64,000 nt of DNA from Paraphysomonas bandaiensis (taxonomy: Eukaryota > Protista > Chrysophyceae). This document shows positions 7,235 through 55,325 of this stretch, piece by piece; the first letter of the stretch is position 1, and the number at the start of each line of letters is the position of its first letter. Under the pieces are notes generated by a model. It did not search any database. It worked only from the letters and a program-made list of their open reading frames with translations, and was not told the DNA's origin. Made by a program: the position numbers and the translations under genes. The stretch spans positions 147,330 through 211,329 of the forward strand of contig CBFFRP010000335.1 of NCBI GenBank assembly GCA_965644295.1, given 5' to 3'.

Positions 7235-8660
7235 CGTGATGAATACGCTTTCATATATTGGTCTGTTGTTTGTATGCCGCTAACATACAGTTATGGCTGA
7301 CCTATATGTTTCTTTCTTGTAGACCTTGCTAAAGCGTTTTACTATTTTATAGTAATTATTAGAAACTTTATACTGCACTGATTAACCACGCGTCATTGGT
7401 CTGGGTACTAAGTTATCTCAAAGATACGTTGCAAACATCCTCTGTGCAAGTCATAGGCTGTGTAGCTGAAGATGGTGATGAGTATTGAATTATTGGATTA
7501 GTGTTCATAGTCACTAATATTATCACCGACTAAGATATTATAGTATTCTACCGTAGCAAGCTATTTGTGGTGTTGATAGGCACAAGAAACCGATATACAA
7601 GAGTTCTCATCAATAGAGCAGGTCAGAGGAGTCACTGTAGTTAAAGGTATAGTTATTCTAGACGGTCTACGTATATATATGTAGCTACAATACACTACTG
7701 TATATTTAATAGCAGGAGCTGCCTTTTACCTTCACACCATCTCTGAAAACAATGAAGCATCTTTTCTAGCGATGTATTTGTGAGATTAATTGGAGTTTAC
7801 CAACAGAAATACTTCGAAGTCCTATAGTAATAAATAAAACTCAAAAATACATCACTTTACCTACCCAAGATTCTACGGTCCATAAAAACGCTGTAAGCAA
7901 GCCCAAATATTGCACAGTGATATGTGTATATGTATAATGTTTTACATATTGCAATAGTAATACAAGTTGGACCAAAGCAATATCAATTACTCCGAAAGGT
8001 ACTGCAAGATTAGAGTGTACACAACAATCAAGTCAAGTTTCAGATTCCTCTCATACAATAATTAACGGGCCAAAGTTAGATAACGGAGTTTGATATTTCC
8101 ACCAACTGTTAGCTTTAAAACTAATCTGAGTGGCTACTTTACTTCAATGGATTCTCTGCAAACAAACACAATATAGCTATGATACATATCAGATTCGGTC
8201 TGATATCCTATTGAACTCTACCAGTACCAGCATAGGATTCAACATCTAGACATGACCGTCTCTCTCGGCTCTCTTGTGCGTGTTGTGTTGGATATACCGG
8301 TATACTCGTAGCTGATTGGCTGTTCTGCCACATCCAATCATGTGCGTAGAATAGTATCTCATTCGATATGTAGGGGCGACTTAAAATACGCTAACTACAG
8401 TTGTATTGTCGCATCACTGCGTGGAAGGGAGGCGTGCAGTTGGAGTTGTCGGCACATGTACAGAATACATACACATACATACATACACATCGTACATACA
8501 CGACATCCATGTATATATATACAAACCAATAGTGTCATATCGGTCACTGTGGTGTGAGTGTTCCACTGCATCATTGAGATCACGAAAAGCGACTGCTCAT
8601 CACAAAATTCTGTTTGTAAGGTAGTATCAGGCGGTGTGTGTATCATCCTCCTCTATTAAC

Positions 8661-12368: not shown

Positions 12369-13734
12369 ACTCAGCATATCACGGCGGCATGTACTACCTC
12401 CCTGTAGACGTGTACAGGGTGTCGCAGGGGTTGAGTTGCTGATAGATATTCACTTGTGTTCGTGTCGAGGGATACTGTATGAGGAAAGAACAAGACGGCA
12501 GGGAAGACTCCATCACAATAATCTCCAACTGTATGTATACGTATATGCATGTACAGCATACAGAGTACATGTACAATATACGTAACAGTAAGAACATCTA
12601 TCAGCTGTACTTGTATACCTATACGTACGTACTCTGTGTACATACAGCAGTATATGCATATTGTACTGCTGCAGTGGTGTATCATACCCAGCCAGCATGT
12701 GATTGGCTGATCTCAAGATCTATTGCTGTCTGTGTCGATATCCAGCAATATATCAACAGCCCGACATACAATGCAGCAGATGTCGATCAAACATAAAGTT
12801 TTACATACCATGTGGGCTAGTGGTTTGCAACAACATGTATGTATAGTTCATATAATAACTGGGCCTGTCTAAAGAGACCTGATGCACGGCGAGAAAGGCA
12901 TCGAAATGAACGTACAGAGCCGTATGGAATAAAGAGATGACATACTCTCGAGGTGGAGCCCGATACTACGGTAGCAAGGTAGCAAGCAATAAAGGCAATA
13001 GAATATTATCTATATCGATATAAATTGTGTTGATATTTTTTTAAAGCGGACGTTTCCACTCTCGAGTACGATTATTTTATTCCATGTGAAAAGAGAACTT
13101 AAATGTCATTTTTAGAAGTTGTTGTCCTTATTGAAGTCTTTACCTCTTGTTGTACTGTCTCCGAATCTTATAAAGTGGAAGCCCCATCACAACAATTTAA
13201 ATAAATGTACTGAAGTTGATCAAGTAGTCATTATAGTCTCTCAACATATGTGTGGAATTCATGGCTGTAGAACAGGTGCATGCTGTATCCGTAGTGTTCA
13301 AACAGGTGTTGACTCAAACTCAGTCTATTCTATAATAACAAAGATAATCTAAATTTTGGATTAGACTAAAACTACATGGGTATTGATCGTTGCAAACGCA
13401 TATATAACTCGTGTTGTTCACATGCTGACACGTCAACTGCTAACTAATGACATTAAGTATATAACTCGTGCGTGGAGTTAATGCAAAGGTAAGTGTAGTC
13501 TATTCGTACATGACGTATCATATTTTTCAAGGTCGTCACTCTAAACTAGCAGTCCACGAATAAACTGATAACCTGGATACAAGTACTAATGCTGACACCA
13601 AATTATGATTATAAGAAACAATAGAACAGGTGAAATAAAGAAATGAACCAATAACTCGAACATTACTTAAATTCAAAACATTTAACTGGTTACAGAAGAG
13701 AAATATGTGGGTAGTAATACAAATACCACCATGT

Positions 13735-14931
13735 TCATCGCTTCTCAAACAGATAATGACTCACAAAGTATTCCCCGCCGTCATTGTACGAAAAAAATTC
13801 CGAGCAGCTGATAAAAAATGTTCTCCATCGAGCGAACCATTTAATTACATTATTTTTTCCATAGTATTCTGCAAAAAGTTCTTTGACTTTATTCCGATGT
13901 GCGTCCATTCGTTGCAGCCATGCCTCGAGGGTTAATGAATAGTGTTTGCCATTGACAGCCCACTGATCGCGTAGGACGAAATCCCGTTGAAAATGAAGCA
14001 GCAAATCATCACTTGGTAGAGTACCCCCCGCAAAGAAATATTTTGTCATCCAGTCCTTCTCACTGGTAACTTCATAATGGGAAGGCAGCCATCTACTGAC
14101 AAATATGTGTACAAACAGTAGCCCAGAGGGTTTCAGCAGTCCTGAAAGTTTATGAAGCAGCTTCTCATAATTTTTCATGTGCTCAAACATTTCAATCGAT
14201 AAAAGTCGGTCAAATGTCCCTAGTAGAGATGAATCAAACTCAGCTGTAGAGATATCGCATGTTAATACTTCAACATTGTGCAATCCCCGGTGGGAGGCTT
14301 CGGTCAATATATATTCTCTCTGAGTTCGCGAGTTACTCAATCCCACGACTGTACATTTCGGAAAAGTTTCAGCTAACCACAATGTCAAGCATCCCCACCC
14401 GCATCCAACATCCATTATTCTTAGAGTAGATTCAGTTTCAATATGTGCTCGTTGGGCATACATCTGCAACATGCTAATTTCAGCGTCATTCAGTAACTTC
14501 GATGCATCCCCACGTGACACGTTCTCAGGATACAGACAGGAGCTATACTTTTGTCGTTCACCGAGAACAAGGTTAAAAAAACGTGTATCGACCTCGTAAT
14601 GTTGTTCATTTGCCTCTGAGGTTTGTTCAGCAATATTACGCGTACGAAGATCTGCGATAAATTCCCTCTTCATTGGCAAAGTTTCACCTAAACTAAGCTG
14701 AAGCTGGCTCTGCTTATCTTCACCAATCAGATAGCGGCATCCCATACGCGTAATAAAGTCTGGTAACATACAGCAATCATGAAGCGCAATGCAGAGTTTG
14801 AAAATCAAGCTTTTTCCTGCGTTTGTTAGTACGATACCTCCAATCACGCACGATACGCCAGCTGCACCATAGAGAACTTCCTTACTATACGAGCAGCCTC
14901 TGAAGGAACGAAAACAACAACAATCTGGCAT
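13735..14931 (-). CDS. SAM-dependent methyltransferase, CFA-synthase / coclaurine N-methyltransferase-like, intronless
   Basis: ANEQHYEV, KYSSCLY, motif I MDVGCGWG, FDRLLSIEMFEHMKNY, WMTKYFFAGGTLPS. Confidence 0.9.
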   Translation of the reverse strand: MPDCCCFRSFRGCSYSKEVLYGAAGVSCVIGGIVLTNAGKSLIFKLCIALHDCCMLPDFITRMGCRYLIGEDKQSQLQLSLGETLPMKREFIADLRTRNIAEQTSEANEQHYEVDTRFFNLVLGERQKYSSCLYPENVSRGDASKLLNDAEISMLQMYAQRAHIETESTLRIMDVGCGWGCLTLWLAETFPKCTVVGLSNSRTQREYILTEASHRGLHNVEVLTCDISTAEFDSSLLGTFDRLLSIEMFEHMKNYEKLLHKLSGLLKPSGLLFVHIFVSRWLPSHYEVTSEKDWMTKYFFAGGTLPSDDLLLHFQRDFVLRDQWAVNGKHYSLTLEAWLQRMDAHRNKVKELFAEYYGKNNVIKWFARWRTFFISCSEFFSYNDGGEYFVSHYLFEKR

Positions 14932-18714: not shown

Positions 18715-20061
18715 CTACAATAGCAGGGTAAGTACAGTGGCCACGACAGCCTGGACCTCCATCTTCAATTGCTGGGTGTTCACATACTGAAGCAAGTCAC
18801 TGGAAGTGTGGTACTGAGGATAGTCACTTGCAGCCATTCCACTCTCAAAGAATCCGACGGATGGGTAGCCATTCTCATAGAACGACAGGTAGTCGGAGCA
18901 GCACGACGAACTATCTGCAGTGGGTAAATCGGGTACATATAGGGCAGTTAATTCCTTCGCCAAGGTCACAAGTTCGGGCGTGACCGACTTATCCTTGAAC
19001 CCAAGAGTAATGACATCACCAGCTTGATACCCCAACATATCCGCATTTACCATACCCACAATGTTGACACCCTGTTCACTCCATAGTGAAGCTAAATACC
19101 TACTGCCCAGAAGCCCCTGCTCTTCCCCTGAAAAGAAACATATCTTTAGCCCTCGATTAGCAGGAAATTCAATGGTGCTAACAATACTGGCCAGTTCAAG
19201 CATAGCAGATGTGCCAGATCCGTTGTCATCCGCTCCCGGAGCACGGTCAGTTGGTGAAGATGAATCTACTGTACGGGAGTCATAATGCGCACCAGCAACT
19301 ACCCATTCCGTACTGTCATTATCATGGGAGGATTTCCCGTAGGCAGGCCATGTAGCCACGATATTTTCTGCCATATCAGGACGAAAAGAAACCAATTCAA
19401 CACTGAATCCAAACTCCGTTAGACGTGATACAATATACTCCTGGGCTTCGTGGATTGTTTCGGAGTAAGAGTTTCGGGTTTGAAAAGACTGTAATGCTTC
19501 AACAGAAAAAATCAAGGAATCCTCGGACACTGATTCTACGCCTTTGGTAACATCAGGGTTAGTTTCTAACTTCAGTGAAGTCCATTCGTGAATCAGCGAT
19601 TCTTGTAGGAGTGGCGGGTGAATGGTGTGTGAAGGTACTGGTATGAAAGATGTATCTTCATCGGCTCCGCAGCCATCTAACCCGCTTACATTAGGAACAT
19701 CAGTACCACCGCCTACAATGAGGGAGTTCCCATGATGCAAGTACACTGGTAGTCCTGCAGATAGTAGCTTATTCTTAGTTTTGATGGTCTCGTCTGGTGA
19801 TGGTTCCTCAATAACCCACAGACCATCATCACCAGCTATATGACCTTTAAACACCAAACAATCAGACAGATCGGACTCACTCTCCTCTACGAAGATACTA
19901 AAATCACGATAAGTTCCTCTGAACGAGAGGTGTGTGTTGGTCTGGTATGACAGAGAAGTGTTCGTGTACTCTACAGCACACCACATACCGTTACCACCTC
20001 CACTCACACTAACAGACACAGATAACAGACACATCAGAGACAGGAGGAGGAGGGAGGACAT
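18715..20061 (-). CDS. Secreted M28 family Zn-aminopeptidase
   Basis: Signal peptide MSSLLLLSLMCLL. Zn ligands in VVAGAHYDS, PGADDNGSG, GEEQGLLGS, NADMLGY and YHTSSD. Confidence 0.92.
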   Translation of the reverse strand: MSSLLLLSLMCLLSVSVSVSGGGNGMWCAVEYTNTSLSYQTNTHLSFRGTYRDFSIFVEESESDLSDCLVFKGHIAGDDGLWVIEEPSPDETIKTKNKLLSAGLPVYLHHGNSLIVGGGTDVPNVSGLDGCGADEDTSFIPVPSHTIHPPLLQESLIHEWTSLKLETNPDVTKGVESVSEDSLIFSVEALQSFQTRNSYSETIHEAQEYIVSRLTEFGFSVELVSFRPDMAENIVATWPAYGKSSHDNDSTEWVVAGAHYDSRTVDSSSPTDRAPGADDNGSGTSAMLELASIVSTIEFPANRGLKICFFSGEEQGLLGSRYLASLWSEQGVNIVGMVNADMLGYQAGDVITLGFKDKSVTPELVTLAKELTALYVPDLPTADSSSCCSDYLSFYENGYPSVGFFESGMAASDYPQYHTSSDLLQYVNTQQLKMEVQAVVATVLTLLL

Positions 20062-20508
20062 GGTGGTTGGTAGATAAGGGTGATAGATCATGCCTTTAGT
20101 TAACTGTCCTCTATGCATACATAGCTACAGAGCATCCCACCTCCAGTGCATGTATCTGCTGTGCGTATACCATATACCGGTACTGTACTGTGCGATATAC
20201 AGTCATATCACATAATTTAGGCACAGACATCCCATATATGGGACACTGTTCACTGCTACGTAGCGAGACTACAGCTGTATACTGTACTGTATGAATCTTT
20301 CCAATTAGCACGTACTAAAAAATGCTCTATGTACTCTGTATGTATATATATACCAGTATATACCAGTATAGACTATAGGTATACTGTACGTCTATGTGTA
20401 CTTCTACACTCACTGCCGCTGGACGTGTATATCTGGTCTGGCGGATATGGACGACACACACACGCATATCACTCCATTGAGAGATCCTCATACACCACTA
20501 GACGCCCC

Positions 20509-32328: not shown

Positions 32329-33734
32329 TTCTCCCCGCTAATCATTGAGCTTCCTAGTAGTTAGCTCAGCGCCTTTTCGTACGTGTCTATTAATGCTACC
32401 TTTAGTTGAGTAGGTAACTTTAAATTAACGACTGTAATATATACATGTTGTAGGAAAGTTTGCATAATTTTTACACTTTTAGTAGTCTCAACTTTTATTT
32501 TTAATTTTAGTAGTAGCATCTGCAAAATATAGTGGGAACAGATGGAAATTTTGGTAGGTTTGAAAATGACACTCCTGTTACAGTCATCTGAAGTGGGTTG
32601 GTATTTACTGAAAAACAGCTCACAGTGGCTGTAAGTTAAATAAACCTAATTCTGATGTATTTTTCATGTGTGTAGATCATAAATACGTGTTCTTCTTCTA
32701 TCAGATACACTGAATTTTATATCTAAAGTTGTGACGTGATTACGAAATACGATATATATCGGTTCACTATCACTTGGCCTGTATACTTTCCGCCCTAATC
32801 AGTGTTTCATTGTGTGGTAGAAATGAGCATTTCACTGATTGTATCCTTGCTCTACTCTTACTCCTTAACCTTGGTTTGTTGAACACAATGAATTTGAAGT
32901 AAGAAATTAGAATTATTAATCTAAACACTTCACATGAAATCTATTTTTATCTCTTGTGAACATCTACTCTCAGGAAAATAAAGAATTGATCTTTATAATA
33001 GTAAAAAAATGTTGGATTATTATAGTGTAAGTTCTCCCCGCTAATCATTGAGCTTCCTAGTAGTTAGCTCAGCGCCTTTTCGTACGTGTCTATTAATGCT
33101 ACCTTTAGTTGAGTAGGTAACTTTAAATTAACGACTGTAATATATACATGTTGTAGGAAAGTTTGCATAATTTTTACACTTTTAGTAGTCTCAACTTTTA
33201 TTTTTAATTTTAGTAGTAGCATCTGCAAAATATAGTGGGAACAGATGGAAATTTTGGTAGGTTTGAAAATGACACTCCTGTTACAGTCATCTGAAGTGGG
33301 TTGGTATTTACTGAAAAACAGCTCACAGTGGCTGTAAGTTAAATAAACCTAATTCTGATGTATTTTTCATGTGTGTAGATCATAAATACGTGTTCTTCTT
33401 CTATCAGATACACTGAATTTTATATCTAAAGTTGTGACGTGATTACGAAATACGATATATATCGGTTCACTATCACTTGGCCTGTATACTTTCCGCCCTA
33501 ATCAGTGTTTCATTGTGTGGTAGAAATGAGCATTTCACTGATTGTATCCTTGCTCTACTCTTACTCCTTAACCTTGGTTTGTTGAACACAATGAATTTGA
33601 AGTAAGAAATTAGAATTATTAATCTAAACACTTCACATGAAATCTATTTTTATCTCTTGTGAACATCTACTCTCAGGAAAATAAAGAATTGATCTTTATA
33701 ATAGTAAAAAAATGTTGGATTATTATAGTGTAAG
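32329..33734. repeat. Tandem duplication, 2 x 703 bp
   Basis: 32329-33031 is repeated at 33032-33734; no differences were seen by eye. Confidence 0.95.
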
Positions 33735-34450: not shown

Positions 34451-37306
34451 TTATTCTCTTTTTCTCTTCAGAGCTGCAGCTGCTCTTGCTACATTCGGCT
34501 TCCTTCTCCCACCACCACTGTGTGATTGCCGCTTATCCATCTCTTCCTTACGACTCTTACCAGACATGTCGAATTGACGTTGAGCCTTCATATTATCACC
34601 GAAATCTGAATCATCTGTGCCCTGATTCTTACGTAAATATTCCACAAAAGGATCGCGACCTTCATTTCTCAGTTTCTCAGCAAAATCGTCCTGCGTTCGT
34701 CTTCTATTTCTCTCTTTCTGGAAAGAAGAGTGTGTAAACGGTACCTCTGCTTCTAGCGCATCTTCTTCCTCAAATTTCTTGGAAACATATGCAGGAAGAG
34801 ATCCCTTCAGTGGGTTTCCTTCAAGAGCATCTTCCCACTCCTTCCAGTCCTTATCAGAAATACCCAGAAGCTTTCGCTTCTCCTCAGCCGTTTCAGCCCG
34901 CACAGCATCATCCTCATCGCTGCCGCCTTTATCATCAACGGTTTCAATCCTACTCATCAGATCACGCAGTTCGTCGTCGTCGCTTTCGGAATCTAAGGCC
35001 ATATCACTATCGCTATCAGTGTTTTTGCGTTTATAGTCCAGCAGTTCTTCGTGATCACCTCTGTAGAACCTGTTTCTATCCGTGCGTTTCTGCGGCCCTT
35101 CACCTGGAGCAAAGAGGCCTTTATCTTTCTTACTATCTGGTGGTGGTGGCACAATATCTCGGCGAACGGGGGGGTATGCGGTGGGTCGTCTTCTAGAGAG
35201 TGGACTCGGGGTAACCACAGAGTGAATAGACGATGTTTTCTCGTCCTCACTTTCTTCCTGGTTAGATTTTATTAAGCCAACCTCAGGGGAATCCACTGGC
35301 AGAGCGGGAACAAGACCGCCCCATCTTAGCTTCCTAACGGCGGAGTAGAAAGTAGGTATCTTCCAGGCAGAACCCTTAGAGACTGTACTGCGTGTGATAT
35401 GACCATCGGACTGACATACGTCCATGACTACGTGCTGCTTGGCTTTAATGGGAGATCTGATTAGACGCCCATATTCTTCACGGAATAATGGTGGGTTGTA
35501 ATCATCCCAGTCGACCTACAGTAAAAATAATTAATTCATAATCAAATACTCTGATATATTCCTTTACCTCATCAATTAGCTCCTCCACAAGCTGTGACGT
35601 GTCTGACCCTGGGTTGTCCATGAATCGACGAAGAGTAACCAAAGGGGTTGGATCCCGGACATCAGCCCCGGCCTCTTCCGGTGATTGAACCCAGTCATCC
35701 TGTCCATTATCACTGCGCATGCCGTCATTTGAGTACCGATGAATCGCAGAGTGCTTCACACGCTTCTGGATGACGCAGTACGAGAACTTCTCCTCACTAT
35801 CCTTACGAATCATTGCAGAATGCGCACGCTGTGAAAACGAACACCAAGATCCCTATTATGTGCCCAGTTCGGAATTAACAAGAATATTCATTAGCGAAAT
35901 ATGGATCCCACCTTTCGTAAAGGGCATACCCCATCGTGCGTGCACGGGGAAATCACCTTGACCTCAAAGTCCTCATATTTTAACCGGGGATGTGATGGCG
36001 GCTGAAGCACGTATCGAACAGCAGTATCTTTGGTAGGAACCGGCTGTGGAGCACCGCTTGAACTGTACATATAGTGATGATACTACATTAAAACACGAAT
36101 ATTTAACAACATGTAAAATTACCCGCTGCTTCCGAAAAGCTCAAGCAGCATCTGCCTCGCTGAACGAGTATGATGAGAGCCCACAGGATTTCCGTTATCA
36201 ATAATCACAAGGATGCCATCCACATCAAGGGCCTCATACATAACTTGGACTGCTGCACGTTTTACTGCATCGCTAGTGAGTTCTGATAGCGTATACGCAG
36301 ATACAGCCATATCGAACCGTTGGTCGTCACCCCTTGCAGCAATGCGGCTAACTACATCAACTGTCTTCGAGTCAAGGGTTACACTTACACCAGCGCCCCC
36401 TGAAACTGCCTGTTTTGTTACTCTTCCTTTATCATGCGTGTCTTGGTGGGTGTATGGCAAGCCCATGCGAGTCGTCATCACCTTGGCGGCATCGAGCATC
36501 GACTGGCTCATATCTACACCATTATATCGACGGACTACATCCCTTCCCCACACATCCACAGCAGCAGCACCAGCAGTACCAGGACCACAACCAAAATCTA
36601 GTATACGCTGTGGCTTGTACTTTGGCAAGATAGTTTTAATTTCTCGGAAGACGCGCCGTGTTATGACATAGCGACTCGGAAAGAAGTAGTTAACGTATGC
36701 TATAGTCTCTTCGGGACCGTAAGGCATCACCCTGTCGGCCTCCTTGGAAGCATCCGATGGAGCAGTGGGCATCCAACCTAAATTACGATACGCATACTTC
36801 CGTTGCAAATCTCTATCAGGCTTGAGCATCCAGTTCTTCACGCACCTTCGGATTTGCTGCGGAGTACGATGCACAGATATCTCTTCCTTGCGCTGCGTAA
36901 CCCAATCAGGAAGATTCTCAATAGATCTGTATGGAACTCTTCCCAACTTTAAGAGCTGTTTTCCAACTTTAATCTGCGGCATAAACTCCTCTCCGATCTC
37001 TTCGAACTCATAGTCCTCATCCTCATAATCATCCTCATCATCAGCAGGATTGTTGGGCAGAGGCGTCTTCTTTCTCGGCATCATATCATCGTCAAACTCA
37101 TCGTCTGTGTCCTCCTCTATAAGGACGGGCTTATCTAGTATCCTATCTAGAGGGTTCTTCATATTGAACGGTGTGTACGCTATGCCTCTATGATGGTAGA
37201 ACACATGCGACGAGCGCCCGCATGAGAGAGACTCGGGTGAAGATGATACACTTACACGACGATTCAATGAACGGAAGCGTCGAGATAATGCAGATACTCG
37301 GAGCAT
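34451..37306 (-). CDS. METTL17: Mitoribosome small-subunit assembly factor METTL17/Rsm22, multi-exon
   Basis: Presequence; PQRILDFGCGPGT, AYTLSEL, PCTHD..CP, CSFSQR, EEKFSY, RLIRSPIKAKQHVVMDVC. Confidence 0.88.
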
Positions 37307-37589
37307 GATGACCGAGAGCTACTATGCGACTAGTGACTTAATCGGATGGTTTGGACTTTAATTCTTCAGTCTCTCGCACCATATACACACACACATCTCA
37401 CCCGTCCACATACACACTACATACACAGAGAGATGGGCACATACAGGCGTATACATACATATACGTGTACGGTATGTGGCATGCATCTTCTATCCATCCA
37501 CTCCCTACAGAATACACTGTACTCTGTCTGTATCCCAGCCATGTATTCTGCTGCAGTACAGTGTATAGAGGCAGTGCAGGTATACTACG

Positions 37590-37723
37590 ACATACATACA
37601 TACATACATACATACATACATACATACATACATACATACATACATACATACATACATACATACATACATACATACATACATACATACATACATACATACA
37701 TACATACATACATACATACATAC
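37590..37723 (+). repeat. (TACA)n microsatellite, ~33 units
   Basis: Direct read; ends ...catac immediately before LTR1. Confidence 0.99.
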
Positions 37724-37929
37724 TGTGGCATGAAACTCCTAGTTTTAGGGCTTGGGAGTTTCTCTCCTTCTGGAAACATGGGGTTTCCCTTCAGGATACG
37801 GTAGTCGAGTGGCAGTAGTTTCATGCCAGACAATTCATACATGATTCTTATCTACATAATAATCATATATTCTAGTCCTGCTCTGTTCTTGCTGTTAGCT
37901 ACGTACTTGTAGGCAGTGGTCTGGGCACA
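37724..37929 (+). mobile_element. Extra or solo LTR (206 bp, TGTG..CACA)
   Basis: Identical by eye to 38034-38239; flanked atac|LTR|atac. Confidence 0.92.
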
Positions 37930-38033
37930 ATACATACATACATACATACATACATACATACATACATACATACATACATACATACATACATACATACATA
38001 CATACATACATACATACATACATACATACATAC
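37930..38033 (+). repeat. (ATAC)26 microsatellite between two LTRs
   Basis: 104 nt, direct read. Confidence 0.99.
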
Positions 38034-38464
38034 TGTGGCATGAAACTCCTAGTTTTAGGGCTTGGGAGTTTCTCTCCTTCTGGAAACATGGGGTTTCCCT
38101 TCAGGATACGGTAGTCGAGTGGCAGTAGTTTCATGCCAGACAATTCATACATGATTCTTATCTACATAATAATCATATATTCTAGTCCTGCTCTGTTCTT
38201 GCTGTTAGCTACGTACTTGTAGGCAGTGGTCTGGGCACAATATCGATATTTTCCTGATTGTCTAGAAGGACTACAGCTTCCGCAAGGAAGGAGTGTGTAG
38301 AGCAAGAAGGGGGATGGCCAGGGGAGCCGATAACCTCTAGCTCGGGTTGTTGAGGGAAGGAGGAGGTTTTCTAGGGACCTCGTAAGCTCCAACCCTGATA
38401 TTGGACTGCAGAGGGATGCAGTGACCATGTAGAGGATCATGGGGACTCAGAGGAAGGCTCAAGT

Positions 38465-39470
38465 GGACTTAGAGGTGTTGCGAAGGAGCAGCAGGGTACT
38501 CTGTCCCTTGATGCAGATAGAGACTCTGATGTGTCCATCTTTGATTAGTGCTTCCGAAAGGAAGGAGTGTGTTTAGTTGTGTATGGGACTTTGAGTGAGC
38601 TGCGAGAGAGCAGCAGGGTACTCTGTCCCTTGTGATGTGTCTATCTTTGATTAGTGCTTCCGAAAGGAAGGAGTGTGTTTAGTTGTGTATGGGACTTTGA
38701 GTAAGCTGCGAGAGAGCAGCAGGGTACTCTGTCCCTTGTGATGTGTCTATCTTTGATTAGTGCTTCCGAAAGGAAGGAGTGTGTTTAGTTGTGTATGGGA
38801 CTTTGAGTGAGCTGCGAGAGAGCAGCAGGGTACTCTGTCCCTTGTGATGTGTCTATCTTTGATTAGTGCTTCCGAAAGGAAGGAGTGTGTTTAGTTGTGT
38901 ATGGGACTTTGAGTGAGCTGCGAGAGAGCAGCAGGGTACTCTGTCCCTTGTGATGTGTCTATCTTTGATTAGTGCTTCCGAAAGGAAGGAGTGTTGTTTG
39001 TTGTGTATGGGACTTTGAGTAAGCTGCGAGGGAGCAGCAGGGTACTCTGTCCCTTGTGATGTGTCTATCTTTGATTAGTGCTTCCGAAAGGAAGGAGTGT
39101 TGTTAGTTGTGTATGGGACTTTGAGTAAGCTGCGAGGGAGCAGCAGGGTACTCTGTCCCTTGTTGCAGATAGAGAGATTAGTGCTTCCGCAAGGAAGGAG
39201 TAAGTTTAGTTGTGTATGGGATTTAGAGTAAGAGAGTAAGCTGCGAGGGAGCGGCATGGTACTCTGGTCCTGGAAATAGATAGAGACTCTGATGAGTTAT
39301 GGGACATATAGAGGAAGCTGTGAGAGAGCGGCAGGGTACTCTGTCCCTTGATGCAGATAGAGAGATGAGTGCTTCCGAAAGGAAGGAGTAAGTTTAGTTG
39401 TGTATGGGACTTAGAGTAAGCTGCGAGGGAGCGGCATGATACTCTTTTCCTTGTGATAGTTAGAGACTCT
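38465..39470 (+). repeat. Internal tandem array of 106-bp structured units
   Basis: cttccgaaaggaag recurs at 38551, 38657, 38763, 38869, 38975 and 39081 (period 106), with rearranged copies at both ends. Confidence 0.95.
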
Positions 39471-39722
39471 GATGAGTCCTTTAGAACCGGGGCCCAAGAG
39501 ATGGTCACCGGCTTTGATAAGTGATTTATGAGCGCGGTCAGCGCAAGGCGAGCAGCCAACGTAGTGGGGGACAATGCATTCCCTCTTGCGAGAGAGAGAA
39601 ATGATCAGTCCGGGGGAGCAGTGTCTCCGAGCCTTGGCGTGTACGCGTTTTACCCTTGTGGGGGGGAACGAGCCAGCGTTCGTCTTCCACTACGTAAAAA
39701 TTAATCTTGAGGTCCGAGGGAG

Positions 39723-42010
39723 TTGGCCCCTCTGGACGTAGGAATCAGTGATATAGGGGAAGAGTGGTCGTACCCAGCGGAGGAACAGCTGCTTTCGCTG
39801 GGAGAAGATCTTTCAAATTTCTCAAATAGGTCGACAAGGGACCGAGAGGATATGAAAGAAATTCGCAACGATCAGTTAGACTCCATTGACTCTGATTATC
39901 TAGACTCTGAGGGTGAGTCTCCTACGATTCCAGAAAAGGTTTATGGGTCACCGGACCTACAAGAAAAGAGTCGTGAGGTCCTGTGGGATACAGGGATATC
40001 TTTCGATTAGGGATTCGAAAAGGAAAGCCCACGAAGTTAGAATTTTTAGTTAGAAGTCCGGAAACCAGCTGAGGCATGGCTGATGCCGGTAAGAAATTGC
40101 CTCGTAGGAGGTTAGATAGGAGTCGTCAGCGCGAACTCCAACGTTTAGTGGAAAAGTTAGAGCGGTTGGGAGCGATCCAACCTAGCTCGGCCACTCATTA
40201 TAGTCATTCTTTTGTAGATCCATAGCCACACAATAAGTGGCGATTAGTGTTGGATTATAAGAATCTCAACAAGGTTAGATCTGGCCAATTCCGAACATTA
40301 GGGATATGATTTATCGAATTGGTGCCAGTGGGCGAGGAGTCCCGTAATTGGGTCGCCTTTATTACTCAAAACGGGGTGTACGAGTGGCTCCGGCTCCCCA
40401 TGGGTTTGAAAGGTGTCCCGTCCTACTTCCAGCGGCAAATGCAAAGTAGTGCTAGCGGGTTTAGTGTATGAGATTTGTGAGATATATCTGGGTGAATGTG
40501 TTAAATTTGCTGGCTCGGAAGAGGAGCTGATTAAGGATTATCAGCGGGTTCGGAGAGATTTAGGAAATTTGGCCAAATACCCAGACACAGTTTATGGGTG
40601 TGGCAAATTTGGTAAGAGATTGCGTACGCGTATATGTGCTGATTGCGAAACCATTGCATGCAATGTTGGGGAATTATACTAAGTCGCAGGCTAGACTTAA
40701 GGTATTACAGTGGACGGAGGAGTCCAGTGTTGCCTTTGATGTGCTAAGGGAGCGCATTCATGAGTGTCCCTTGTTATTTTTTATGGATGATGTTTCCCCC
40801 ATCTTCCTATATACTGACGCGTCAATAATTGGTATAGGGGCACACTTGGTGCAAGTCGTGGAGGGTCACGAGCGCACAATTGGGATGATTAGTAAGGCGT
40901 TCGACTCAACGTTAGCTAAGTGGCACACCTGCGAGAAGGAAGGTTTTGCCATCTTTTATGCACTAAATAAGTGGGAATACTTGTTGAGGGATCGACGTTT
41001 TACGGTTCGAACCGATCACGATAATTTACGCCAACTCAAGCAGGAGTATGGCCACATTAAGCGAGTGCAGCGCTGGTTTATGTGTTTTCAGTCGTTTGAT
41101 ATCGTGTTCGAACACCTTCCAAGGGAAATGAATGTGGTGGCTGATGCTCTTAGTCGAGTTTGTGGGGTGGACGCATCCGACAAGATCGATGACAATCTGT
41201 GTTCTTCTCTCGAGCGGTGCCTGGAGGAAGAGTCACATACTGAGGATTAGCGCATCCCTAATCACCTCTGGAAGGCGATTAAGGCTTGTCACAATAGTGT
41301 AGTAGGCCACCATGGGGTGGAACGTACAATGGGAAAGTTGCGAAGGAGCAACAATGATTGGAAGAACATGCGTCAGCATGTTATACGTTTTATTAAGTGT
41401 TGTGTGTGTTGTCAACAGATGTCAACCATTAAGCCAGCAGTGTGGGTTCGGCTTTTTCCTCTATCTAAGTATTCCATGGGTGAGTGTATCTATATGGATT
41501 ATATTGAGGGTTTAATTCCCGGTGAGAATGGGTATACTAGTATTCTGGAGTGGAGCACTCCTTTACAGTAGAGTACTCAAAGGAAGAGAATGGTATGGTT
41601 GAGAGGGAGAATAAGGAAATTCTCCGTCATCTAAGGAATATTATTTTCGAGAAAGTGGTTTTAAAAAAAAAAAAAAATGGTCTGATGTGCTGCCAATGGT
41701 ACAACGTAGCAATCCATGGGTCGACAGGAGTGGCCCGGCACAGTTTTACTGTATGGAGATGCCATAAACCTAGAGGCAGGTTTTATTGTGGATAGGAAGA
41801 ATTTGTCTCCAAGGGAGGAGAAGGATCTGTCCGAGTGGGTTGACAGTACGAGGAACAGTTGCGTTGTTGAAGTATTTGAAGGCTCACTCTAACTATGCAG
41901 TACGAGCCCTACTACCCAAGAGAGAAACGAAGCGCTCCAGGTCTCCGAACACGGCGGCAGAAGAAGTCATTTCGAGTGAGGATGAGTCGTCGCAGCAGTC
42001 AGGAGCTTGA
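39723..42010 (+). pseudogene. Decayed Gypsy pol
   Basis: RT KWRLVLDYKNLN, WPIPNI, AFITQNGVYEWLRLPMGLKG, with YxDD changed to YLGE. RNase H YTDAS/EKE/TDH/VADALSR. Integrase H..GH..CVCC, MDY and NGMVER. Frameshifts, stops and deletions throughout. Confidence 0.92.
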
Positions 42011-42179
42011 TTTATGAGTTTTGACGGTTAAAATCCGCTCTGTCCAGGTGGCGGACACCTATGAGAAGGTTCTCATACATCACAATTTCGTTGGAGTGAT
42101 CAGATAGTAGGGGTGATTTTTTTGGGTGTTGTTTTGTTGTTAGAGTGTCATTTTTTTAGTACATGTGCCACAATTTTCC

Positions 42180-42195
42180 AAAAAAGGGGAAGGGG
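42180..42195 (+). other. Polypurine tract
   Basis: aaaaaaggggaagggg, 3 nt upstream of the 3' LTR. Confidence 0.85.
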
Positions 42196-42404
42196 TAGTG
42201 TGGCATGAAACTCCTAGTTTTAGGGCTTGGGAGTTTCTCTCCTTCTGGAAACATGGGGTTTCCCTTCAGGATACGGTAGTCGAGTGGCAGTAGTTTCATG
42301 CCAGACTATTCATACATGATTCTTATCTACATAATAATCATATATTCTAGTCCTGCTCTGTTCTTGCTGTTAGCTACGTACTTGTAGGCAGTGGTCTGGG
42401 CACA

Positions 42405-43012
42405 ATACATACATACATACATACATACATACATACATACATACATACATACATACATACATACATACATACATACATACATACATACATACATACATAC
42501 CTACATACATACATACATACATACATACATACATACATACATACATACATACATACATACATACATACATACATACATACATACATACATACATACATAC
42601 ATACATACATACATACATACATACATACATACATACATACATACATACATACATACATACATACATACATACATACATACATACATACATACATACATAC
42701 ATACATACATACATACATACATACATACATACATACATACATACATACATACATACATACATACATACATACATACATACATACATACATACATACATAC
42801 ATACATACACATACATACATACATACATACATACATACATACATACATACATACATACATACATACATACATACATACATACATACATACATACATACAT
42901 ACATACATACATACATACATACATACATACATACATACATACATACATACATACATACATACATACATACATACATACATACATACATACATACATACAT
43001 ACATACATACAT
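42405..43012 (+). repeat. (ATAC)n microsatellite, ~152 units
   Basis: Direct read; interruptions near 42501 and 42808. Confidence 0.99.
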
Positions 43013-54364: not shown

Positions 54365-54480
54365 ATGATCCTGACACAGCGACTTTTAATATTTGCTCTG
54401 GAAATGAATTGTTGCTTACTTCTGCCTACTGCACTGTTCCATAACAGACAGACAGTTACCCTCTCGACTTATCCACTGTT

Positions 54481-55325
54481 TGTATGTATGTATGTATGTA
54501 TGTATGTATGTATGTATGTATGTATGTATGTATGTATGTATGTATGTATGTATGTATGTATGTATGTATGTATGTATGTATATGTATGTTTGTATGTATG
54601 TATGTATGTATGTATGTATGTATGTATGTATGTATGTATGTATGTATGTATGTATGTATGTATGTATGTATGTATGTATGTATGTATGTATGTATGTATG
54701 TATGTATGTATGTATGTATGTATGTATGTATGTATGTATGTATGTATGTATGTATGTATGTATGTATGTATGTATGTATGTATGTATGTATGTATGTATG
54801 TATGTATGTATGTATGTATGTATGTATGTATGTATGTATGTATGTATGTATGTATGTATGTATGTATGTATGTATGTATGTATGTATGTATGTATGTATG
54901 TATGTATGTATGTATGTATGTATGTATGTATGTATGTATGTATGTATGTATGTATGTATGTATGTATGTATGTATGTATGTATGTATGTATGTATGTATG
55001 TATGTATGTATGTATGTATGTATGTATGTATGTATGTCTGTATGTCTGTATGTATGTATGTATGTATGTATGTATGTATGTATGTATGTATGTATGTATG
55101 TATGTATGTATGTATGTATGTATGTATGTATGTATGTATGTATGTATGTATGTATGTATGTATGTATGTATGTATGTATGTATGTATGTATGTATGTATG
55201 TATGTATGTATGTATGTATGTATGTATGTATGTATGTATGTATGTATGTATGTATGTATGTATGTATGTATGTATGTATGTATGTATGTATGTATGTATG
55301 TATGTATGTATGTATGTATGTATGT
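54481..55325 (+). repeat. (TATG)n microsatellite, ~211 units
   Basis: Direct read; interruptions near 54581-54590 and 55037-55046. Confidence 0.99.

Follow-up and report, generated by a model that had tools for sequence, protein, structure and literature searches.

A young, internally deleted Ty3/gypsy element inside an (ATAC)n spacer array of Paraphysomonas bandaiensis

The locus described here raises the question of why an integrase-based long terminal repeat (LTR) retroelement lies within a microsatellite, with every host junction in the same register of the repeat. The stretch analyzed comprises 64,000 nucleotides of contig CBFFRP010000335.1 from the chrysophyte Paraphysomonas bandaiensis (referred to in full as the window), in which a Ty3/gypsy element and a solo LTR are embedded in (ATAC)n arrays (Table 1). 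An earlier note on this DNA had attributed the pattern to an integrase, or a tether, that selects TACA arrays. The explanation that we favor, and to which we give about an even chance, is that a young, non-autonomous and internally deleted chromovirus-type element entered a dispensable spacer array by ordinary integration, with no need for dedicated recognition of the array. It is the more economical reading: an ordinary integration, or two of them, into the largest dispensable part of the spacer, and later rearrangement by way of the array.

Three LTRs of 206 bp, each beginning with TG and ending with CA, were found at the locus by blastn and direct comparison. No mismatch was found between the solo LTR (L1) and the 5' LTR (L2), and the 3' LTR (L3) carries a single change at LTR position 109 (A to T), giving identities of 99.5-100% among LTRs that share the termini TGTG...CACA. 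At both left junctions (37724 and 38034) the array ends in atac and is followed directly by TGTGGC, and at both right junctions (37929 and 42404) GGCACA is followed directly by atac. All four outer junctions adjoin perfect (ATAC)n; in the right array the first imperfection lies 93 bp away from the L3 junction. No further LTR copies or internal element fragments were found by blastn in the window. The register arithmetic allows a target site duplication of 0, 4 or 8 bp and excludes one of 5 bp. The positions of the four junctions given by the earlier note are exact, as confirmed by direct reading and blastn, and its argument from phase against a 5-bp duplication is correct.

Because L1 is identical to L2 and sits between two perfect arrays, the four junctions are not four independent observations. 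The two at L1 may be copies of the two that bound the element itself, and all four go back to two integrations at most, perhaps to a single one. Two origins of the solo LTR appear about equally likely. Either a second integration into the same array was later reduced to a solo LTR, or a single integration was followed by an unequal exchange in which the right array on one chromatid recombined with the left array on the other. Such an exchange would duplicate the whole element, with array between the two copies, and LTR-LTR recombination within the first copy would then leave L1 behind. The perfect homology that the flanking arrays offer for such an exchange amounts to 134 and 608 bp, and LTR position 109 does not tell the two routes apart. 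An exact period of 310 bp reported by Tandem Repeats Finder (TRF) was rejected as evidence of duplication, being the automatic result of identical LTRs and a perfect array.

It is also conceivable, though we regard it as improbable, that the assembly falsely duplicated the solo LTR with its 26-unit array or mis-joined the repeats, in which case some of the junctions would not be real at this locus. L1 with its array does exactly repeat L2 with its array over 310 bp, and an exact 703-bp tandem duplication elsewhere in the window (32329-33734) shows that such structures or errors occur here. The periodicity, however, being automatic, is not independent evidence of an error, the arrays (0.1-0.85 kb) can be spanned by long reads, and even a mis-join presupposes that at some site in the genome an LTR is flanked by (ATAC)n at both ends.

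What inserted can be read from the 3959 bp between L2 and L3. Matches to reverse transcriptase (RT), RNase H and integrase occur in that order, both in the Pfam matches and in a tblastn alignment collinear with the pol of the intact relative L005. The domains are spread over three frames with intervening stops. Relative to the 1122 residues of L005 pol, the window copy covers residues 184-941 except for 813-873 in the integrase core, and tblastn found no counterpart in it of residues 941-1122, which include a chromodomain. Neither gag nor the aspartic protease gave a Pfam or tblastn signal in 38240-39800, and downstream of the integrase remnant no open reading frame (ORF) was seen before the polypurine tract of the window copy, hence no env gene. 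The polypurine tract runs into the 3' LTR through a junction (...GGGGTAG followed by TGT) common to the window copy and its relatives. Judged from these features, the identification as an internally deleted, non-autonomous Ty3/gypsy (Metaviridae) LTR element is secure, and the description as a gypsy-derived LTR retroelement in the earlier note is borne out by the ordered RT, RNase H, integrase finger and core remnants, the polypurine tract and the TG..CA LTRs.

A HMMER scan with the RNase H segment retrieved thousands of gypsy pol proteins, the best with ~55% identity. Because its nearest full-length relatives end in a chromodomain, the lineage is probably of chromovirus type although the window copy itself has no chromodomain. 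The earlier note had pointed to the integrase C-terminus of a coding-intact relative as informative, and there the closest intact relatives (P0019, P0021, P0022, L005, L030 and L011) do carry a chromodomain, whereas the C-terminus of the window copy is lost. The element resembles chromoviruses of the Tf1/sushi and MAGGY groups in its pol order, HHCC finger, TG..CA LTRs and polypurine tract. It differs from them in having no gag, protease or C-terminus, a shortened RT and a deleted integrase core, and in a palindrome that replaces the tRNA-type primer site. Targeting through a chromodomain normally involves chromatin marks and not a DNA motif.

The LTRs are nearly identical around a pol that is dead. 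This points either to a recent insertion mobilized in trans or to homogenization of the LTRs, and we favor the former. Copies of the same family were found in ENA metagenome assemblies with nucleotide identities of 94% (L001, ERZ27287676), 93% (L084, ERZ23498699) and 84% (L002, ERZ17294217). L001 is collinear with the window copy across the shortened RT, and L002 and L084 are collinear with it across the integrase-core deletion. As these diverged copies appear to share the deleted layout, a propagating non-autonomous lineage is suggested. The features of a non-autonomous, trans-mobilized element are found together here, namely near-identical LTRs, a pol without usable RT and integrase, and a defective layout that L001, L084 and L002 appear to repeat over the parts they cover. 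The close ENA copies are internal fragments that stop at the LTR edge, as expected where short-read assembly breaks at repeats; L084 ends 17 nt inside the 3' LTR and carries the same TGTGGCATGAAACTCCT as the window copy. The M28 peptidase of the host has no close match in the three ENA assemblies (best 63-72%). The findings suggest that relatives of the host, present at low abundance, carry the element in multiple copies.

How the clade integrates was read from 80 related loci (37-59% identity) in JGI metagenomes, most of which are contigs with collapsed LTRs and no flank. Usable flanks were found only in L044 and L018, and L057 looks chimeric. L044 is full-length with identical LTRs; the DNA around it is unique and shows an unambiguous duplication of 4 bp, TATC. 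To the left of L018 the flank is likewise unique and ends in GTAC; the end of the L018 contig is an artefact, as Nextera adapter sequence (CTGTCTCTTATACACATCT...) occupies its positions 8180-8213. These flanks support a stagger of 4 bp for the clade and show that insertion next to microsatellites is not a habit of the clade as a whole. The 4-bp ATAC duplication proposed in the earlier note fits the junction phase and agrees with the stagger in L044. At 40-48% identity, L044 and L018 are too distant to speak for the family in the window. Exact scans with the LTR start (22-mer or 20-mer) gave no match in the metagenome contigs of JGI, in IMG/VR or in the genomes of GTDB, and a protein-word search with the 43-residue LTR-encoded peptide, aimed at ORFs running from the LTR into the flank, returned no match.

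The spacer that received the element is bounded by ORFs reading outwards from 37306 and from ~43.2 kb. The earlier note had placed the arrays in divergent promoters, and the ORFs on the two sides do read in opposite directions, each away from the array. Arrays account for 846 of the 1329 bp of this spacer (64%), as against 2.9% of the host DNA and 4-7% of the ORF-free DNA in the window. The window is gene-dense, and its ORF at 18718-20118 encodes an M28 peptidase 100% identical to a Paraphysomonas protein (MMETSP1103 transcriptome, taxid 36769). The host of the element is accordingly a free-living, heterotrophic chrysophyte, and the sequence is not human. A second array of the same motif (54477-55325) contains no element and is therefore an unoccupied array. 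Because this intact array of nearly the same length lies 12 kb away, the array at the locus is taken to be older than the element. The converse, that the element created the arrays, for instance because its ends or its target duplication seeded an expansion, is in our view very remote. Every LTR end does touch an array; however, the second array matches in motif and size and contains no element, the motif is absent from the LTR ends, and the ACAT-like eroded sequence at 37380-37460, outside the left array, is what would be expected of an old array.

In the favored explanation of ordinary integration, an integrase supplied from elsewhere would have mobilized the element and made cuts staggered by 4 bp in an (ATAC)n array of ~840 bp that already lay between two outward-reading Paraphysomonas genes. 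The array may have been hit as the main part of the dispensable, probably open DNA of a spacer in a gene-dense genome. Insertions outside such spacers would be removed by selection in a compact genome, which would make the array the likeliest landing place. In addition, (ATAC)n is a perfect alternating purine-pyrimidine tract, flexible DNA of the kind favored by integrases. Intasome structures indicate a preference for flexible pyrimidine-purine steps at the target centre, and of the four registers open to a 4-bp duplication in this repeat, ATAC alone has TA in the middle. A mild local sequence preference would then give a repeated register without recognition of the array as such. Elements of the gypsy group are documented to have short sequence preferences at 4-bp targets (TATA, ATAT and CGCG; PMC5408687). 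In compact genomes, moreover, gene-free sites are where many LTR elements are directed (PMC5006619).

Several points weigh against this explanation. Under uniform insertion into host DNA, the probability of a single hit in an array is only 0.03-0.07. If L1 represents a separate insertion, the chance of the same register and orientation is 1/8, and two such hits are unlikely without some specificity. When both inserts and one duplication each are removed, the restored array measures 838 bp compared with 849 bp for the intact array, which leans mildly towards two insertions over an exchange that would have added array. Furthermore, the regional preference assumed for Paraphysomonas is only putative. 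Against these, microsatellite lengths are too mutable for the match between 838 and 849 bp to weigh much, and the locus was chosen for its pattern, which inflates the apparent significance.

The same observations can be read as true targeting, in which the integrase of an autonomous partner, or a host tether bound to the array, directs integration into (ATAC)n at the ATAC register, with L1 and the element as two hits. We consider this possible, though rather unlikely. It would account for junctions that all adjoin perfect repeat in one register, for hits in arrays that form so small a part of the host DNA in the window and for the restored array length that matches the intact array. Targeted integration is moreover common among LTR elements of compact genomes (PMC5006619), and the LTR start TGTGGCAT, common to the window element and its distant relatives L021 and L022, suggests a conserved interaction between integrase and element end. 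These points are offset by a case that consists of one locus and one or two events, with junctions that are perhaps not independent, in a spacer of which the array is the larger part, and by a second array in the window that is unoccupied. The relatives lend no support either, as L044 and L018 lie in unique DNA (though at 40-48% identity), the window copy, having no integrase C-terminus, says nothing about a targeting domain, and the JGI, IMG/VR, GTDB and LTR-peptide searches found no additional flank of the window family. Array selection by the integrase or a tether, as put forward in the earlier note, is accordingly a reasonable lead that the present evidence does not establish. That the element would be the first LTR element with fixed-register integration into (ATAC)n through a partner integrase or host factor, in a protist clade that also seems to prime from a palindrome, is in our estimate unlikely.

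Comparison with known systems shows how the locus relates to established cases of repeat-specific insertion. Kojima and Fujiwara (2003) are reportedly the source for microsatellite-specific elements of the R1 clade. Strict repeat-specific insertion is established for R1-clade non-LTR elements (Waldo and relatives), which occupy the same kind of niche by inserting in fixed register in a simple repeat (PMC4640811). Their mechanism differs, as it involves an endonuclease nick and target-primed reverse transcription with no LTRs and no integrase, and their specificity rests on many copies compared with the one locus here. Strict repeat-specific insertion is also established for the SaTar and MuTAnT Mutator-like elements (PMC5907723, PMC4486113). 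Ginger transposases are related to gypsy integrases, and a Ginger2-like, gypsy-integrase-like DDE enzyme is associated with the (AT)n microsatellite insertion of sesarmid-crab nimaviruses, which counts in favor of targeting (PMC10871703, PMC2836005). These DDE systems resemble the window case in that an enzyme of this type is linked to insertion into (TA)n-type arrays. None of them is a retroelement, however: some move as DNA by cut and paste, the others are giant viral genomes, and their target motifs differ.

Drosophila errantiviruses and their two-ORF derivatives (gypsy, ZAM and Idefix subgroups) are integrase-based, with 4-bp duplications and a real sequence preference for the short alternating pyrimidine-purine targets named above (PMC5408687). 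Their targets, however, are palindromic 4-mers scattered genome-wide and not arrays, and they have no chromodomain. ATAC is not a palindrome, and the window element has neither a palindromic 4-bp target nor an env-like third ORF. The elements Ty3, DGLT-A, Skipper-2, Tf1 and Tj1 share with the present case a gene-dense genome, a gene-free spacer on the promoter side and the logic of a safe site (PMC5006619, PMC4600332). Their tethers are the Pol III machinery or factors bound at promoters, whereas the sole tRNA gene in the window (13640-13739) is not near the insertion.

Microsatellites have been proposed from enrichment data to be preferred targets of transposable elements, LTR elements included (PMC3547029, PMC12477314). 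In the literature searched, no LTR family was found to be documented as using a microsatellite as its dedicated target, such specificity being described for non-LTR elements and some DNA transposons. If targeting were true, strict repeat-specific insertion would be extended to integrase-based LTR elements, and the locus would offer a tractable case of how an integrase or tether reads a simple repeat, with a bearing on tools for safe-site integration. Apart from this, the locus shows that long microsatellites can receive insertions and then rearrange them.

A separate feature of the element is the palindrome directly after the terminal CA of the 5' LTR, at the position of the primer binding site. 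ATATCGATAT occurs once in the window, exactly at the L2 boundary. No tRNA-complementary primer binding site with TGG was found after the 5' LTR. Palindromes at this position are perfect, 10-12 nt long, start with A and in most cases precede TT(T). When a terminal CA, the palindrome and TT were required in strict succession, 17 of the 80 related loci matched on the sense strand, compared with 2 on the antisense and 0.5 in shuffled sequences. Loci with the palindrome are L007, L010-L013, L015-L018, L022, L031, L034, L035, L038, L043, L044 and L057, in addition to the window (38238-38252); in L018, L031, L044 and L057 the palindrome is kept and the following base is different. Across loci its sequence varies (ATATCGATAT, ATATTAATAT, ATATATATAT, ATAACGTTAT, ATTATATAAT and ATATTCGAATAT) while self-complementarity is always retained, which points to base pairing and not to a fixed tRNA primer as the likely reason for the palindrome. 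An unusual mechanism of priming or dimerization is suggested, and one might speculate that two genomic RNAs pair through the palindrome. No description of such a palindrome at the primer-site position was found in the literature searched, and both this palindrome and the pure (ATAC)n spacer arrays merit a study of their own.

Self-priming in the style of Tf1 was considered and rejected, as the sequence after the 5' LTR is complementary to the LTR over no more than 7 nt. Within the LTR itself, the first ~15 nt have an inverted copy (14/15 matching) ~90 nt downstream (38036-38050 against 38124-38138, and likewise in L1 and L3). The fold of the whole LTR was no better than that of shuffles (z = -1.2).

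Table 1. Positions of the LTRs, arrays, element parts and neighboring features in the window
Feature	Position	Strand	Details
Rsm22-like methyltransferase, left flanking host gene	36119-37306	-	reads away from array
Left (ATAC)n array	37590-37723	+	33.5 perfect units; TRF, no period-4 breaks
Solo LTR L1	37724-37929	+	206 bp, identical to 5' LTR; blastn, direct comparison
Middle (ATAC)26 array	37930-38033	+	26 units, perfect; TRF
5' LTR L2	38034-38239	+	TG...CA; blastn, direct comparison
Palindrome ATATCGATAT + TTT	38240-38252	+	at primer binding site position; no TGG tRNA-type site
106-bp tandem repeat in leader	38527-39232	+	6.7 copies; decayed copies to ~39480; TRF and repeat-family search
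Protease-RT linker and shortened RT remnants	39825-40586	+	three frames; tblastn with L005 pol residues 184-464; weak RVT_1 match 40310-40468
RNase H domain, longest open segment	40564-41247	+	228 aa; Pfam RT_RNaseH E=3e-25
Integrase HHCC zinc-binding domain	41251-41568	+	stop codon between RNase H and HHCC; Pfam Integrase_H2C2 E=1e-9
Integrase core end remnant	41541-41792	+	~60 core residues missing upstream; tblastn, weak rve_3 match
Polypurine tract	42180-42198	+	16 purines plus TAG; abuts 3' LTR; read directly
3' LTR L3	42199-42404	+	differs from L1 and L2 at position 109 only
Right (ATAC)n array	42405-43012	+	152 units, two small imperfections; TRF
Second (ATAC)n-motif array	54477-55325	opposite strand (-)	uninterrupted; 212 units, 849 bp; TRF; between outward-pointing ORFs

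The leader of the element contains the 106-bp repeat (38527-39480 with its decayed copies), which recalls the ~100-bp tandem repeat modules in the 5' untranslated region of the Drosophila element Tirant; these modules have been linked to chromatin localization (PMC5408687).

An Rfam scan returned nothing but sub-threshold, low-complexity mir-297 matches on the arrays. The 703-bp duplication mentioned above is a tandem repeat of 100% identity in an ORF-poor, AT-rich stretch, and is either very recent or an assembly artefact. The (ATAC)n arrays themselves are very long and very pure (~840 bp with the inserts removed, and 849 bp), and both lie between outward-reading ORFs. As the two are alike in length and in position, such arrays may have a role, or have reached a length equilibrium, in the spacers of Paraphysomonas.

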